In this document: piece after piece, positions 2,638 through 58,850 of the stretch
Layout: the number at the start of each line of letters is the position of its first letter
Numbering within the stretch: position 1 is the stretch's first letter
Origin: Pecten maximus
Lineage: Eukaryota
Direction of reading: 5' to 3'
NCBI RefSeq assembly: GCF_902652985.1
Contig: NC_047033.1
Coordinates: 5,270,001 to 5,334,000, forward strand
DNA: 64,000 nucleotides
Notes under the pieces: generated by a model
What the model was told of the DNA's origin: nothing
The model's input: only the letters and a program-made list of their open reading frames with translations
Database searches by the model: none
Made by a program: the position numbers and the translations under genes

Positions 2638-3140
2638 TTATACAATTATTGACTGGGGCTGATGGCAACAGCGATTTTGTTACTCCCAAGATCCTGACTA
2701 TTGCCCAATGCGAATCTGAGGGCAATAGTCAGGGTCGACATTGCCAACTAAATCTCTGTTATCCACAATCAATATTATTTTTACATTACACTTACTATTA
2801 TCAGCTTTGATTTTCTCCGTAGCTCAGCATAAAATTTCCTCAAGCAAGTGTTCAAGTTTTCGTCATTTTAAGATAGCAGATCATCTAATGTTGTAGACGT
2901 ATTGAAATTGGCCAAATAATCGTCCATCATCCTAGCAGCAACCTTGATTACATTGGCAGTGTTTTGCTGTCTGTGTCATTACATAGTTTTACACTTGTAT
3001 CATCTTCGCAAGAAGCAAATCGGGCTGAGCATTCCATGTTTGCTTATAATGGAATCGGAAGCCAGCTGGCAGACGTCAACATTATGTGCAAGGTCATGGA
3101 GACGTATTAAACACCAGCCAATCAAATTGCAAGTTTAACC
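2638..3140 (-). mobile_element. Degenerate Crypton-like element: terminal fold-back plus decayed N-terminal recombinase-like ORF remnant
   Basis: Starts TA|TTATACAATTATTG; hairpin 2643-2780 with inner stem cctgactattgccc/gggcaatagtcagg. Minus strand 2980-2811 translates (one frameshift, one stop) as DTDSK(N)TANVIKVAARMMDDYL...LNTCLRKFYAELRRK, which aligns with the 23999-24262 ORF. Right boundary is approximate. Confidence 0.75.
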
Positions 3141-4853
3141 CGGATCGCGGGAAATTCGAATTGCTACCCTGGTAATCACGGGAGGGCGGGCGGACAGTAA
3201 AAATTAAAAGACCGGGCCGAGGAAGCTGTTTTCTGTTTGCAACATATAAGAATAGAACTGATTATCTTTTTATTATAGTTTTTGTATTGATTTTAACTCG
3301 CTAATAATCTAAACACTGTATTACTCCCAACTCCACATTTCCTGTTTACTGTCTGACTGCCAGCTCCTACTCTCGACTTGTTGTTCTCTCCAAACTCCCA
3401 AAATGTGTCATCCTAAATGGTTCCTGCTACACTGCTACAATATAATAAGACTGCTGATAATGATAATTTTATATATTTTTTTTGCGTAAGACCTGCTGAA
3501 ATTAACCCATACGTCAGCACAACCGGCCTCCCCCACAAATTACGTCACAGACGAGACTTCCTCCACTAGACTTCACACTCTCACTACATTAGTCTATAGC
3601 TCCAAACCAAAATAATTATCTATTGCTACATATAGCTACGTAAATAAAACTTTTACACTGACTCTAGCCAAGGAAGGCTAATAAGCTGCATTACAAATTA
3701 TGTTAACAATAGTTAAATGACCAGATAAATGCATTTAAGTATCAATTTCTAACGACTCCGGTTCTAAATAACGCCCACTTAAACATGACAGTGTGTGTCG
3801 CCTCACCACACATTAACAAAGGCATGTCGCTAGTCTGTGTTACATTATATATTTAACAAATTTATTTAAAAATCAAATTCGTGAGCAGCATACTAAAGCC
3901 TGCCTAACATTAGGTTACATGATATTCATTCATGTACACCCGTGTATAATGTCACGCTGATAAAAATATGTAAAAATGAAAATTAAGGTTATCCAGTGTG
4001 AAGTTGTTTTATTTAATTCTGGAGTACATACAAATTACTAGTTTACCATGGCGTCAAAAATTTGAAAAATTGATGTAAGGCCGCCTCCCAAAACACACAT
4101 GCACTTACCACGCGTGCAGCTCCCACACAGGGAAGACCATCCTTTAATGACCGTATCTGTTGAATTAAACGCTTGTTAGATTGACGTTTATTGTCAACAT
4201 AGAACTTACATTTGGTACTATAGTCTCCCATTGTCTCAGTGTTAATCTCGCTTGCATTTATGGGCGTATAGATGAAGTCGAGATCACATGCCTAGATTAT
4301 TACATCATTTTGATCACCATCATAGAAATGCTTCGCTATGCGCTACGAACGAATCAAACGTAGCGAGGGTAATGATTAAGAACAATAGCGTTACTATGAC
4401 CTCATTTTGGCGCTGTGTTGATCACCGTCACGGCAAGGCATTGTACTGTGTGTTAGATTGGTTGCAATTCAATCACAGAAAGGAAATTGAATTAAAAATG
4501 CTATTATTACATGTACAAACGAACATAGAGTGACAAATATAAAAATAAAGCACGTGTTTATAAAAGGCAGAGTTTAACATGATTAAATGATGTTGATCAA
4601 AATGACATAACAACGACGTCATGTGATCTTGACTGCATCTATACGCTCATAGATTCAGCCCAGATTAGCACTGAACCAATGGGAGACTAATGCTAAATGT
4701 AAATATAAAGATATGAAAGTTCACGTCTTGTGTATCATCGTTAAAGAATACGAAAGCAGAAATTCATCAAACAGAAACGTTACCAAGTGTGACAATTTTT
4801 ACCCGGACAAGGCTGTCATCACACACAATAACAATTTATCGCACGGAATATCT

Positions 4854-5093
4854 TACTGTAAATCACATAGATTTCGCGAAAAACAATTTTTTGCGACTTA
4901 CCTCTTCCGACATATTCGCGAATACATGATTTCGCAAATGCTGATCTAAAATGATTTTAAATTTGCGAATTATCAGCTTTTAGAGTCATGGACTCAATCT
5001 GTAACCGATAGCTTGACCACCACCCAGCGCTTGACTCTCACCGCGTAATAACGCGAAAATAAATCTCACGCGAAATTTAAGTGATTTATAGTA
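4854..5093. mobile_element. TA-flanked MITE (TACTGTAAA...TTTATAGTA family)
   Basis: Imperfect TIRs tactgtaaatcacatagatttcgcg / cgcgaaatttaagtgatttatagta. Confidence 0.7.
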
Positions 5094-5404
5094 TTTTGAT
5101 AACATCAGATAAATAGGCTGACTTTTCATAAAGATTATTTTTCGGAAATACAATAAGCTGTACGACTCTTTAATAATCTGGAAATCTATCAAAACAATGG
5201 AAATGACAAAAATACATGTACATAGATGAACTGTTTCGGAGACCATAACCATAACCTACACATTTGTAATGTGCTCTGTTTTTAACCAGAAGTGATAAAT
5301 AATACAATAAACATCCTGTTTTGTCGTTTAAGTTAGACCTTATACTATACTGGGTGGGAAAAGGGCCTAGCTATAACGACAAAACAGGGATTACTATGCT
5401 GGGT

Positions 5405-55848: not shown

Positions 55849-56415
55849 TCATTGCTTTCCTACACCGTATCCTGCTCCGTATATCACAAAACAGTACAGA
55901 CAGTATACACAAGTGAGCAAGGTCGGTAACATTGAGGAGGAAAATCCATAACATCTAACCATTGGCTCTTTTTCGTACCCAACCTTGAACGCAATCCGTG
56001 CAACGACAAATAAAACCACAAGTAATGGTATCACCTTCATCGTTTCGGATGTAAGGTAAGTACATAAGATCATTTGGGCGACAAAATGAAGTAAGTATTG
56101 CTCTAGAGTATTTTGAAGGATATTTCTTGCAAGCTGAGTAAGCTGTACGCCTCGACTATTCATCGGATCTGCCGCGCAGTCATTTTTCTCCCGAATGTAC
56201 ATCACACCTCGCATTCCCATGAATAAAACAAAGGCTCCACATATTTGCCATCGTAATGTGAAAACGAGTCTGTCGAGGACGGAATCCATAACCGGAAGTT
56301 GGAACGGGAAGAATTTGTAACCAAAGGAGAAGTAGAGTGTAGACATTCCCAAACCAGTTCCGACTCGGAAATACCAGTCTGATGATCGGCGTTTGGTCCA
56401 ATCAGAGGATGTCAT
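55849..56415 (-). CDS. MAPEG/TMEM79-like membrane protein, paralog 4 (most divergent)
   Basis: Same motifs (LQNTLEQY, FVVARIAFKVGY); first ATG at 56415 (the track ORF starts at a TTG, 56433); acceptor at ~56437. Confidence 0.88.
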   Translation of the reverse strand: MTSSDWTKRRSSDWYFRVGTGLGMSTLYFSFGYKFFPFQLPVMDSVLDRLVFTLRWQICGAFVLFMGMRGVMYIREKNDCAADPMNSRGVQLTQLARNILQNTLEQYLLHFVAQMILCTYLTSETMKVIPLLVVLFVVARIAFKVGYEKEPMVRCYGFSSSMLPTLLTCVYCLYCFVIYGAGYGVGKQ

Positions 56416-58424
56416 ATCATTAACTGTTGTCAATTTCCTGTAAAGACAAAAGAAAGAAAGAACGATTTAAAATATTTCTGTTAACGATATACATGTATTC
56501 ATCTTAATGTAAAACCAACCATGCTGTCTCATCATAAAGCTGTACAATCTAGCTCGGATCAAAGTATCAAAGCGTTTGCGATAAATTTGATGGCGGTTAT
56601 ATCAACATTTGGTAAAATGATACGCCCTCTCTGACATAATCAACATATTGAGACAGCATTGCGGACGCGGCATCGAGGACGTATCTTCTGCGGTCCTTTA
56701 CTCAGGAACATATAGACGACATTTGGACACAAGGTAATTATCTATTCTATGTGTAGAATATAATTATAATAGTCGCAACTCCTTATTCATGGTAGGAACC
56801 GTAAAACTCGTTATAATTGTCATTGTATACTTAGGCCAGTTTTCTGTATATTTCAGGGGGTTTTCTTATTCTATCAGCAGCAGTGAATGTCATCTTATTA
56901 TTCATTTGGGCTGTGACATGTATCATTCATGCAGATTTCCCTATTTGAAATCAGGTAAGCATGTAAGCCAATAAAGGACATTTTAAATTATAACTGACGT
57001 TGTATACATTTTATTTTGCCGACCCAATCGCAGAAACATCCTTCCGATTTCTTCATTTTGTGTTAGCATGAATGTATCGAGGTGAAACAATTCAGAACAA
57101 ATTGAGTGTAAGATGCAGTAGATACCGAATTCTATCATTCATCACACGTCAGTGATGCTGAGGACCTTTAAAGCGCTAATACATTGGAAGCAACTAGGAA
57201 TACTCAAAACAGTTCATATATAGATTGGGGGAGGGATGCCGTTGCCTCATTATTGAAACATATTTGTTAGGTAAACTGGTAGCATATATAGTGTTATTTT
57301 TACATGGATGATACCGTTAGTTCCGGTTGGACACAATGCTGCTGGTTTAAATACACGCGAACAGGAACGCATGTATTCCAGTACAAAACGAACACACTTT
57401 TATTGACTTCACATCGGAGAGCTCTGCACAAGGCAGTTACATATCACATATTATATAATGTACGAGTTATGTCCCTTGACTTTCTACATAATCTGTGTGG
57501 ATTTGAAATGAGCCTATAAAGACAAACAAACTGTGAATTCCCGATGACCTGTTCTTTATAATAAAACAATCGACGAAGGCTTGCCGAAAGAAAAACAGTT
57601 TTACACCATAGTAACCGTGTGATTAAAAATATAAAACTTACCTTCGTTGTTGTAAACGAGGATACTGTCGATTTATTTCTGGACTTTCAAAGTAGCTACG
57701 ACACTTGTGTACTTACACTTGTGTACTTACGTGTGTGGTACCAGACCCCGGCCAGTCAAGATATTTATCGATCAATTGTGTCTATATTTAGCCACAGGGG
57801 AAGGACGTCACACGTTTCAGCCAGGTGCTACATACACATACAGTACATTTTGCTATAGTTTAAGATGGGGAGGGTAGATGTCAATGCAGTTCCTTAACGT
57901 GTAAAATTCTCTTGTTTTTTTGCAATTGGGCTATTTAAAACACCTTTAAACGAAATCAATTTATGTGTAAATTATGTGCTAATGATATAGAAATATATCA
58001 AAATTTAATCTCTATTAATTATAATCTCTATCATAGTGGTTTAAATATACTCATGTTTATCATAAATGTCTTACAACAGCGCCATCAATGTTTATTACAC
58101 CAATACAATATACTGTGTAAATGATCAGCAAAATATGAAAACAAATTATCTTCCAAGATCAAACTCAACTATTACAAATCCATGTATGTAGTTTGTATAT
58201 GGTTTGTATTAAATAATGATGGACTTCCTTTAATGCTCGACCTGGATATCATATCTCTATACCACACGTAAGACGGCGATAAGGAGCCTACCGTTTCATA
58301 GAGCCATTGGAGTGGACAGGTCAGATAGGTGTTTTTCATCATTCCCTTTTGAAAGGTAAATATTTGTTCATTGACCAAAGTTTTAGTGAACCTTCCTTGT
58401 GATTTGTTTTACTATTATCACATA

Positions 58425-58850
58425 TTATATAAATAGTGCCCTTGTCTGAGGGGAATATGGAGGATTGTTTCCCCGAGGGAACATTATCTTCCCGAGCCGA
58501 TAGGCGAGGGAAGATAATGTTCTCGAGGGGAAACAATCCTCCATATTCCCCTCAGACATGGGCACTATTTATTTTATTATACCGAATAGAAAAATTTTCT
58601 AGTGAAAAAATCTGTTTTATCTGGTACAGTTCTCTTGATGTAAAACTACACTGTTGCGTTTGTAAGAATTGTCTCCCTTCTCAATGTTCGGGATTTTCCG
58701 TAAAAAACAATCGTGCGTTTTCGGGCGGAGCGGGGAACATTGCAATATCCCACGGCAATGTTGACCGCTGTTTCTGACACTGCATATTGTTTCAGGTCAT
58801 GTGATTAGGAATTGACCAATAATAAGGCGAGAATCTTACATAAGGTATAA
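58425..58850. mobile_element. Complete non-autonomous Crypton-like element with a near-perfect terminal fold-back
   Basis: TA|TTATAT...hairpin 58430-58571...TTTTATTATACCGAA...TCATGTGA..CCAAT..AGGTATAA|TA; same architecture as 23797-24475 in the opposite orientation. Confidence 0.85.

Follow-up and report, generated by a model that had tools for sequence, protein, structure and literature searches.

Structure-conserved, strand-specific hairpins at the ends of Crypton-type DNA transposons in Pecten maximus, a candidate folded recombination site

Introduction

In a 64,000-nucleotide stretch of the Pecten maximus genome (RefSeq assembly GCF_902652985.1, contig NC_047033.1, positions 5,270,001 to 5,334,000 of the forward strand; hereafter the window, to which all coordinates without a locus prefix refer), five fold-backs with recurrent GA/GA mismatches mark the ends of Crypton-type elements. 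These structured Crypton ends are real and non-random, and apparently undescribed. We consider it probable that the fold-backs serve in cis as the end structure of a group of animal Crypton DNA transposons, which encode a DUF3504-type tyrosine recombinase (YR), and of their deletion derivatives, and that the recombinase recognizes the folded form. We show here the anatomy of these ends, the covariation of their stems, their strand polarity, their link to YR genes, the exact ends of the elements and the absence of a target-site duplication (TSD).

To our knowledge, the mechanism of Crypton transposition has never been shown experimentally, and the ends of these elements have been called hard to define. 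CryptonA DNA transposons were reportedly described by Goodwin in 2003. Animal Cryptons were later characterized as elements without terminal repeats of any kind, and hairpins were not mentioned (Kojima and Jurka, 2011; PMC3212892), while in a CryptonA paper from 2026 the termini were still variable or undescribed (PMC13465315). Full-text searches of the Crypton literature from 2011 to 2026 found no description of a hairpin or palindrome in these elements, in line with a first reading of the window made from the letters alone (hereafter the sequence-only reading), which knew of no such structural code. The present analysis provides exact ends, an empty site, young high-copy families and a conserved, covarying DNA structure with a strand-specific non-Watson-Crick code.

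Anatomy of the fold-backs in the window

The sequence-only reading had listed five fold-backs and quoted their apex sequences, and all of them lie where it had placed them. Family F1 is represented by a non-autonomous element of 428 bp (58426-58853, minus strand, a sense orientation inferred from its layout), in which TATAT, the hairpin, TTTTATTATACC, 260 bp of internal sequence and GGTATAATAA follow one another; the 144-bp hairpin (58429-58572, plus strand) contains two C-G[GA/GA]G-C loops at a distance of 17 nt and is capped by GATA. In family F2, the imperfect palindrome of 145 bp (24327-24471, minus strand, antisense) has C-GA-G/C-GA-G at the apex, a GTA triloop and GA/AA 17 nt further down. 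The hairpin end of family F3 (9714-9872, plus strand; TATAC ... TTTTATTATACC), which has relatives at loci L004 and L026, shows the apex GGC-GAA-GTC and partly decayed GA positions. The F4 end (18518-18645, plus strand) has lost about 20 nt from its right arm, and an intact relative was found 3' of a recombinase gene in locus L074. The F5 end (2639-2790, plus strand) is decayed: its right arm keeps GA and its left arm has AA at both loops, a CpG-type change, as had been suggested for this copy. With parameters for DNA, folding gives hairpins of about 145 nt, at -73 kcal/mol for the 58-kb and 24-kb copies and -44 kcal/mol for the 9.7-kb copy.

All 2x2 internal loops in the five copies are C-G[GA/GA]G-C or GA/AA. 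These GA-type loops flank a 3-4-bp apical stem that is closed by GATA, GTA or GAA, and they recur 17 nt lower. The second opposed GA/GA that had been reported at this distance is present in the 58-kb copy; the 24-kb copy has GA/AA there, which is not decay of that copy, as had been assumed, because AA in the lower loop belongs to the master sequence of the F2 family (56 of 58 copies, with GA/GA at the apex). Seven other palindromes of the same DNA contain no GA/GA loop and show 1x1 mismatches alone. Across eight well-kept Crypton-type hairpins, 17 of the 2x2 loops are of the GA/GA type, counting one GA/AA and two with an additional adjacent mismatch, and a single loop is of another kind. No Rfam family matched at the hairpins.

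A further palindrome of 137 bp (16945-17081, minus strand) has one C-G[GA/GA]G-C loop. Two fold-backs of another family, which lack GA/GA, lie inverted around it at 16571-16692 and 17088-17178, and may represent a nested insertion. CG-rich 21-bp tandem repeats (CGCGTTATTACGCGAAACTAA) form arrays in opposite orientation at 17908-18133 and 19689-19894, about 1.6 kb apart, with the 18.5-kb hairpin between them.

Covariation of the stems and strand polarity

The arms of the five copies had been taken to be unrelated in sequence. They align without large gaps, agree in overall length and have both the terminal ~11 nt and the CCCGAG blocks in common; it is between these landmarks that the stems have diverged, and they have done so by paired changes. 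In a sample of about ten families, covariation was counted for F1, F2 and F9, which were walked in register outward from the apex; RNAalifold with MAFFT mis-registers the apex. Two-sided changes that keep the pairing ranged from 17 to 29, against 0 to 3 one-sided changes (29 against 2 for F1 and F2, 25 against 0 for F1 and F9, and 17 against 3 for F2 and F9), so that the anticipated covariation of the arms does exist. The three families have one plan in common, consisting of a 3-4-bp apex stem, GA/GA, 17 bp, GA/GA and about 46 bp, with an identical register of the GA/GA positions and no shift of the GNA apex. Since pairs drift by compensation and the mismatches are never "repaired", the mismatches look selected rather than tolerated. 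These counts support the conclusion that the hairpin is conserved as a structure, with heavily covarying stems and fixed GA/GA loops.

Among genome-wide matches to a short pattern, the apex occurs with the stems GGC/GCC, GCC/GGC and GAC/GTC and the loops GAA, GTA, GGA and GCA, while the CGAG words are invariant. A loose apex pattern is only modestly enriched (603 matches against 441 for the control), and the informative part is the self-complementary variants. The five fold-backs belong to what we call the A-type group. A second group of unrelated sequence, the B-type, has three GA/GA loops at a spacing of 22-30 nt, and the 17-nt spacing that had been proposed as a rule is therefore specific to the A-type group, as would be any part it plays in spacing the recombinase.

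The strand polarity of the hairpins is non-random, as had been predicted. In six out of six gene-linked cases, two window remnants included, the hairpin is found 3' of the gene with an antisense GA strand, and the orientation of the hairpin is identical in all 58 F2 copies. The GA strand had been reported as antisense to the recombinase remnants, and this holds for the 24-kb copy and for the 2.6-kb copy, where a weak remnant of the recombinase N-terminus was found at 2814-2966 on the minus strand (tblastn, E = 1e-4); no recombinase remnant was detectable in the 58-kb element. The computed stability of the GA strand is at least that of its complement in each of the nine well-kept hairpins that were folded. 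Replication of the flip-flop kind seen in parvoviruses was considered and is ruled out by the single orientation in 58 of 58 F2 copies.

The same palindrome can also be read as duplex DNA, that is, as an array of binding sites for the recombinase or a host factor, with the GA/GA positions as direct CGAG words and a classical double-stranded circle as intermediate. Formally, opposed GA/GA amounts to the word CGAG pointing the same way in both arms; in the A-type group the flanking CCC and GGG are kept as sequence, and the published Crypton model presumes double-stranded circles (PMC3212892). Within the B-type group, however, only C-GA-G (at times T-GA-G or C-GA-A) is common, which is too short for sequence-specific recognition in a duplex, and the mirrored motif positions, the stem covariation and the GNA mini-hairpin at the apex would be left unexplained. 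Exchange of two strands also needs an overlap at the element ends, where none is common. We regard such an array as rather unlikely.

The complete F2 element and its exact ends

The 24-kb copy is a complete non-autonomous Crypton-type element of 681 bp (23794-24474, gene sense on the plus strand) that sits in a 30-bp satellite without a target duplication. Its 5' end is a short terminal inverted repeat, TTATTATACC (L-ATIR, 23794-23803, plus strand), which is the inverted copy of 24316-24325; this subterminal counterpart, GGTATAATAAAA (R-ATIR, 24316-24327, plus strand), stands directly upstream of the palindrome. The ends are thus asymmetric terminal inverted repeats (ATIRs) with the 3' copy before the hairpin, TTATTATACC / GGTATAATAA(AA) plus hairpin. 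The N-terminal domain of a Crypton-type YR survives as an open reading frame (ORF) remnant of 87 aa (23999-24262, plus strand), to which the GA strand is antisense. On the GA strand, each F2 copy reads TATAC, hairpin, TTTTATTATACC, internal part and GGTATAATAA.

A contig from an independent DNA run joins position 23793 directly to 24475, skipping 681 nt, with no letters common across the joint and CATGTT|ATATCAG as the empty site. This defines the element exactly as 23794-24474 and shows that it was inserted without a TSD. Insertions into satellites in loci L003, L014 and L066 likewise lack a duplication. The target preference is at present approximately ...Y-A-N | W... on the GA strand, frequently with ATGTC 3' of the element on the sense strand. 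The satellite array that hosts the element extends from 22250 to 24661 (no strand assigned) and is broken at 23794-24474; it comprises about 58 units (22250-23797 and 24476-24661), and the junction is uninterrupted in the DNA run of another sample, which points to a polymorphic insertion or to a paralogous unit.

The F2 family consists of hundreds of copies of 680-900 bp that are about 99% identical, and about 60 near-identical copies were included among loci L001-L065. In the genome of 918 Mb, 504 matches to a 17-nt end motif were counted, as compared to 154 for the reversed control. Longer versions of the 87-aa ORF are present in L061, L027 and L020; in L061 and L063-L065, which were fetched as possible longer copies of the F2 type, the long ORFs belong to deletion derivatives only. 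At locus L017 (G000:C2:17161375-17164391), two F2 elements are joined head to tail with zero spacer (GGTATAATAA|TATAC), which equals the sequence predicted for a circle junction.

Every deletion derivative retains the hairpin, and no copy of these families without it was seen among about 60. This bears on whether the fold-back could be a separate miniature element that has repeatedly inserted at a preferred target in Crypton ends, an idea for which the direct TATAC repeats on both sides of the A-type hairpin could be cited. The B-type hairpin has no flanking direct repeat, the position, orientation and strand are constant across every family and both unrelated groups, and the base of the hairpin with the adjacent motif mirrors the joined ends of the element itself. 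Such nested insertions are very improbable.

Crypton identity and recombinase-encoding relatives

The remnants had been taken for Crypton-like, and both their relatives and the YR-gene elements with matching ends bear this out. A phmmer search of 1.8 billion proteins returned 239 relatives of the ORF remnant. All ten long relatives that were tested contain DUF3504 and/or QRICH1-domain matches, and seven of them also match Phage_integrase; with this architecture, the window copies are nested deletion derivatives of a Crypton. The homology emerged only from the large phmmer search, as Pfam did not recognize the remnants of 87-182 aa. No match to the Crypton of locus L066 was obtained with tblastn in the window and the loci, and the window contains N-terminal remnants only, with no catalytic-domain remnant found. 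The genome as a whole gave at least 150 DUF3504/Phage_integrase hits.

Relatives that encode a recombinase and have these ends had been called for, and five such elements, with a YR gene or exon, were found: L066, L072, L074-A, L074-B and C5:33412507-33413536 (33.41 Mb). In the sense of the gene, their layout is a 10-14-nt terminal motif, the YR gene, the inverted copy of the motif, a palindrome of about 140-170 bp and the 3' end. 

L066 (B-type) comes from the same genome as the window, and its sequence is unrelated to the window families. It is a 2.2-kb unit in a 56-bp satellite, without a duplication, and has an apparently intact ORF of 536 aa (DUF3504, E = 2e-31; Phage_integrase, E = 4e-10), in which HxxR, H and Y align to the solved integrase 3nkh. 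Apart from an overlapping frame of 141 aa on the opposite strand, this is the sole long ORF. The ends are GTCATATGATAAA / TTTATCATATGAC plus hairpin, and the hairpin-adjacent TTTTATCATATGAC is the inverted form of the far-end GTCATATGATAAA. The hairpin, 140 bp on the antisense strand with three C/T-GA-G loops, lies about 360 bp past the stop codon and 6 bp from the element end. In L066:1-9529, a 4317-bp unit is duplicated at 98.8% identity, comprising the 2.2-kb Crypton and about 2.1 kb of the 56-bp satellite, which looks like a segmental amplification of satellite and transposon.

L072 (A-type; ENA ERZ25069870) has TTATTATACC at its 5' end and GGTATAATAAAA ahead of the hairpin, and contains a multi-exon gene with RxxE, HxxR and H..Y motifs. 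Its antisense hairpin of 145 bp is a perfect stem apart from two C-GA-G/C-GA-G loops 17 nt apart, with the apex GC-GAA-GC. Only YR exon frames were found over its ~3 kb in an ORF scan of the sense strand. Right after the 3' end of this autonomous element, at L072:5804-5813, stands TTATTATAAC, a near copy of its 5' motif, which may be what is left of a tandem partner, or else a favored target.

The assembly GCA_041381155.1 contributes one element of each group. L074-A (A-type) is 2.3 kb long with the ends TTATTATATGG / CCATATAATAAAA, of which the 5' motif TTATTATATGG is a variant of TTATTATACC, and has one called YR gene within the unit (4001-5592) and an antisense hairpin of 143 bp (5805-5947). 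L074-B (B-type) has a TAGAGG leader, a Phage_integrase ORF (1795-2793, minus strand) and an antisense hairpin with three GA/GA loops (1293-1463). The L072 and L074 genes match DUF3504, Phage_integrase or QRICH1. At C5:33412507-33413536, a locus in the genome of the window that is known by coordinates only, a recombinase exon (plus strand) is followed 627 bp downstream by an A-type end motif on the opposite strand. An ORF scan with tblastn, which is not an exhaustive profile search, revealed no reverse transcriptase (RT) and no Rep/helicase in the YR-encoding elements. Loci L068-L070, L073 and L075 are contigs of at most 2 kb that stop soon after the stop codon, and are uninformative on the hairpin.

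The layout resembles that of Helitron2/Helentron elements, in which the 5' repeat is terminal and its 3' copy is subterminal, directly upstream of the 3' hairpin (Bao and Jurka, 2013; PMC3627910), and pairing of both repeats in a single strand is invoked for either kind of element. It could accordingly be proposed that the window contains rolling-circle elements of this type with captured pieces of Crypton genes, and the published ATIR arrangement fits. Helitron2 elements, however, encode an HUH protein (Rep/helicase) and have a hairpin of 20-30 bp, whereas the elements described here encode a YR, have a hairpin of 140-170 bp, about five times longer, and do not insert between T and T but follow another insertion-site rule. 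The YR gene or exon recurs in five separate elements with these ends, no Rep/helicase was seen by ORF scan and tblastn (for L072, on the sense strand only), and L066 and L074-A are units of 2.2-2.3 kb with the YR ORF as the sole long ORF. Membership in Helitron2/Helentron is excluded by the protein, a tyrosine recombinase only, despite the common layout, and capture of Crypton pieces by such elements seems to us highly unlikely.

Comparison with other recombinase systems

The nearest relatives are CryptonA elements, which likewise have a single DUF3504-type YR gene, no RT, no TSD and many non-autonomous derivatives, and occur in molluscs (PMC3212892). The elements described here differ from them in the asymmetric terminal inverted repeat of 10-14 nt and the structured palindrome of 140-170 bp.

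DIRS-1 also encodes a YR, and a stretch in its interior is the complement of its joined ends; this internal complementary region (ICR) is indispensable, and the element passes through single-stranded cDNA (PMC7192593). DIRS-1, unlike the present elements, belongs to the retrotransposons: it has RT/RNase H as well as long inverted terminal repeats, and the ICR does not form a hairpin with G.A pairs. A DIRS-like identity was rejected for the YR-encoding elements examined, in which ORF scans and tblastn found no RT and the recombinase gene is the sole substantial ORF. Near an F2 copy, at L065:7139-10000, there is a DIRS-like retrotransposon with RT, RNase H and tyrosine recombinase frames, and both classes of YR elements thus coexist in this genome.

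The nearest functional analogues are integron attC sites with IntI and the attP(+) site of CTX phage with XerCD. In these systems a tyrosine recombinase acts on an imperfect palindrome in which strand-specific non-Watson-Crick features are conserved rather than the stem sequence, and single strands are exchanged without long overlap homology. Both are bacterial, and attC sites, 57-141 nt long, rely on extrahelical bases and on R/L boxes (GTTRRRY) instead of tandem G.A pairs. The R''/L''-L'/R' boxes with the GTTRRRY core are absent from the hairpins described here, where C-GA-G/C-GA-G loops and the GNA apex are conserved, and the recombinase is not a relative of IntI or Xer. The IS200/IS605 elements (TnpA) also have subterminal imperfect hairpins that are recognized on one strand, produce no target duplication and transpose strand-specifically by way of a single-stranded circle; they differ in being bacterial, in their HUH Y1 transposase, and in having short hairpins at both ends and cleavage sites set by base triplets adjacent to the hairpin.

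Tandem sheared G.A pairs in a Y-GA-R context and C(GNA)G loops are stable in DNA, and C-GA-G opposite C-GA-G is the most stable tandem G.A context. The d(GCGAAGC) mini-hairpin and tandem sheared G.A pairs in 5'-Y-GA-R-3' are said to have been characterized by Hirao et al., by Li, Zon and Wilson, and by Chou et al. In several families the apex reads exactly GC-GAA-GC, or C(GNA)G. Such motifs are known from phage origins and synthetic DNA, and we know of no report of them as an end code of transposons.

Joined ends and a proposed mechanism

In joined ends, examined in the natural L017 tandem and in silico for L066, the short inverted motifs pair and lengthen the stem by 10-13 bp. This places the end-to-end joint at a small internal loop with unequal sides, about 4 versus 2 nt in the A-type and 6 versus 4 nt in the B-type. 

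This arrangement would remain unexplained if the hairpin served an RNA function, as a structure in an antisense transcript, a source of small RNAs or a terminator, or were a by-product, with mismatches tolerated because they counter palindrome instability. Contigs from RNA runs do span the F2 element, hairpin included, tandem sheared G.A pairs are stable in RNA too, and interrupting a long palindrome lowers its instability. The contigs, however, neither show the strand nor exclude DNA, the loops of a sense mRNA would be UC/UC, and C(GNA)G triloops, like GCGAAGC, are motifs of the DNA type. Any mismatch would stabilize a palindrome, yet 17 out of the 18 2x2 loops are of the GA/GA type on one strand. 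An RNA or by-product origin is in our view improbable.

The lack of a duplication, the lack of an overlap between the ends and the known stability of G.A pairs and C(GNA)G loops favor recognition of the folded form and exchange at the loop. What we infer is that folding may take place in vivo, that the recombinase may recognize the fold and that single strands may be exchanged. The palindrome of the antisense strand would fold into a long hairpin with a GNA-type mini-hairpin cap, often GCGAAGC-like, and with tandem G.A/G.A interruptions in a C-GA-G context. In a joined form, circular or tandem, the short inverted motifs would pair and extend this hairpin by the 10-13 bp given above, and within an integrated copy such pairing would juxtapose the two ends on a single strand. 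The recombinase could then recognize the folded form, either as a single strand or as an extruded cruciform, with the G.A pairs and the loop marking the choice of the strand and the position on it. Strand exchange at the internal loop would lead to integration without target duplication or common overlap. As a more specific and tentative proposal, animal Cryptons of this type may transpose via a folded single antisense strand, in which G.A pairs and the GNA cap select the strand, the terminal motifs pair, a single strand is exchanged at the internal loop and replication completes the process. We put this attC-like single-strand mechanism forward as a well-motivated hypothesis, not as a result.

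Several points weigh against this reading. The energy differences between the strands are small, 0-7 kcal/mol with nearest-neighbour parameters, and the apex loop of L066 is TCT, not GNA. The A-type families share ancestry, and their invariant GA/GA positions are therefore partly inherited, which leaves the B-type group as the main independent support. The symmetry of the palindrome could be kept by a copying mechanism, not by selection on pairing, and a cruciform in double-stranded DNA, or CGAG read in the duplex, would yield an identical sequence pattern. Single strands, circles and binding are predicted from the anatomy, and the sequencing runs are represented by contigs, which do not show circles, strands or molecule ends. 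In locus L067, from another scallop-like assembly, no hairpin was found within 3 kb downstream of a Crypton-type gene, nor was one seen in three short contigs with such a gene.

If Cryptons do recombine through a folded strand, structure-specific single-strand recombination by YRs would not be limited to bacteria, and recombination of the integron attC or CTX-phage kind would have its first counterpart in eukaryotes. A mechanistic link would also be made between Cryptons and DIRS retrotransposons with their single-stranded intermediates. In mollusc genomes, the layout can serve as a practical guide to the annotation of Crypton ends and of the many non-autonomous derivatives, and it gives a clue to how Crypton-derived host proteins (the DUF3504 domains of ZMYM, QRICH1 and KCTD1) once met DNA.

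Other features of the window

A match to TTTTATTATAC at 39416 was considered as a further element end and rejected as a chance match; it adjoins an ORF that is not transposon-like. This ORF of 191 aa (38775-39350, minus strand) has a hydrophobic sequence that suggests a membrane protein, perhaps an exon of a host gene. A tandem array with 45 copies of a 20-bp unit (CGAGTTGTGTTTACTGATGC) was identified at 6175-7083. A single tRNA-like match at 50106-50177 (minus strand; Rfam RF00005, 35 bits) could be a gene or the head of a short interspersed element. At 60484-62188 there is a strongly strand-skewed, microsatellite-like array of an 11-bp unit (CAAATAACCAC, about 148 copies), which explains the GC skew of -0.35 at the end of the window.

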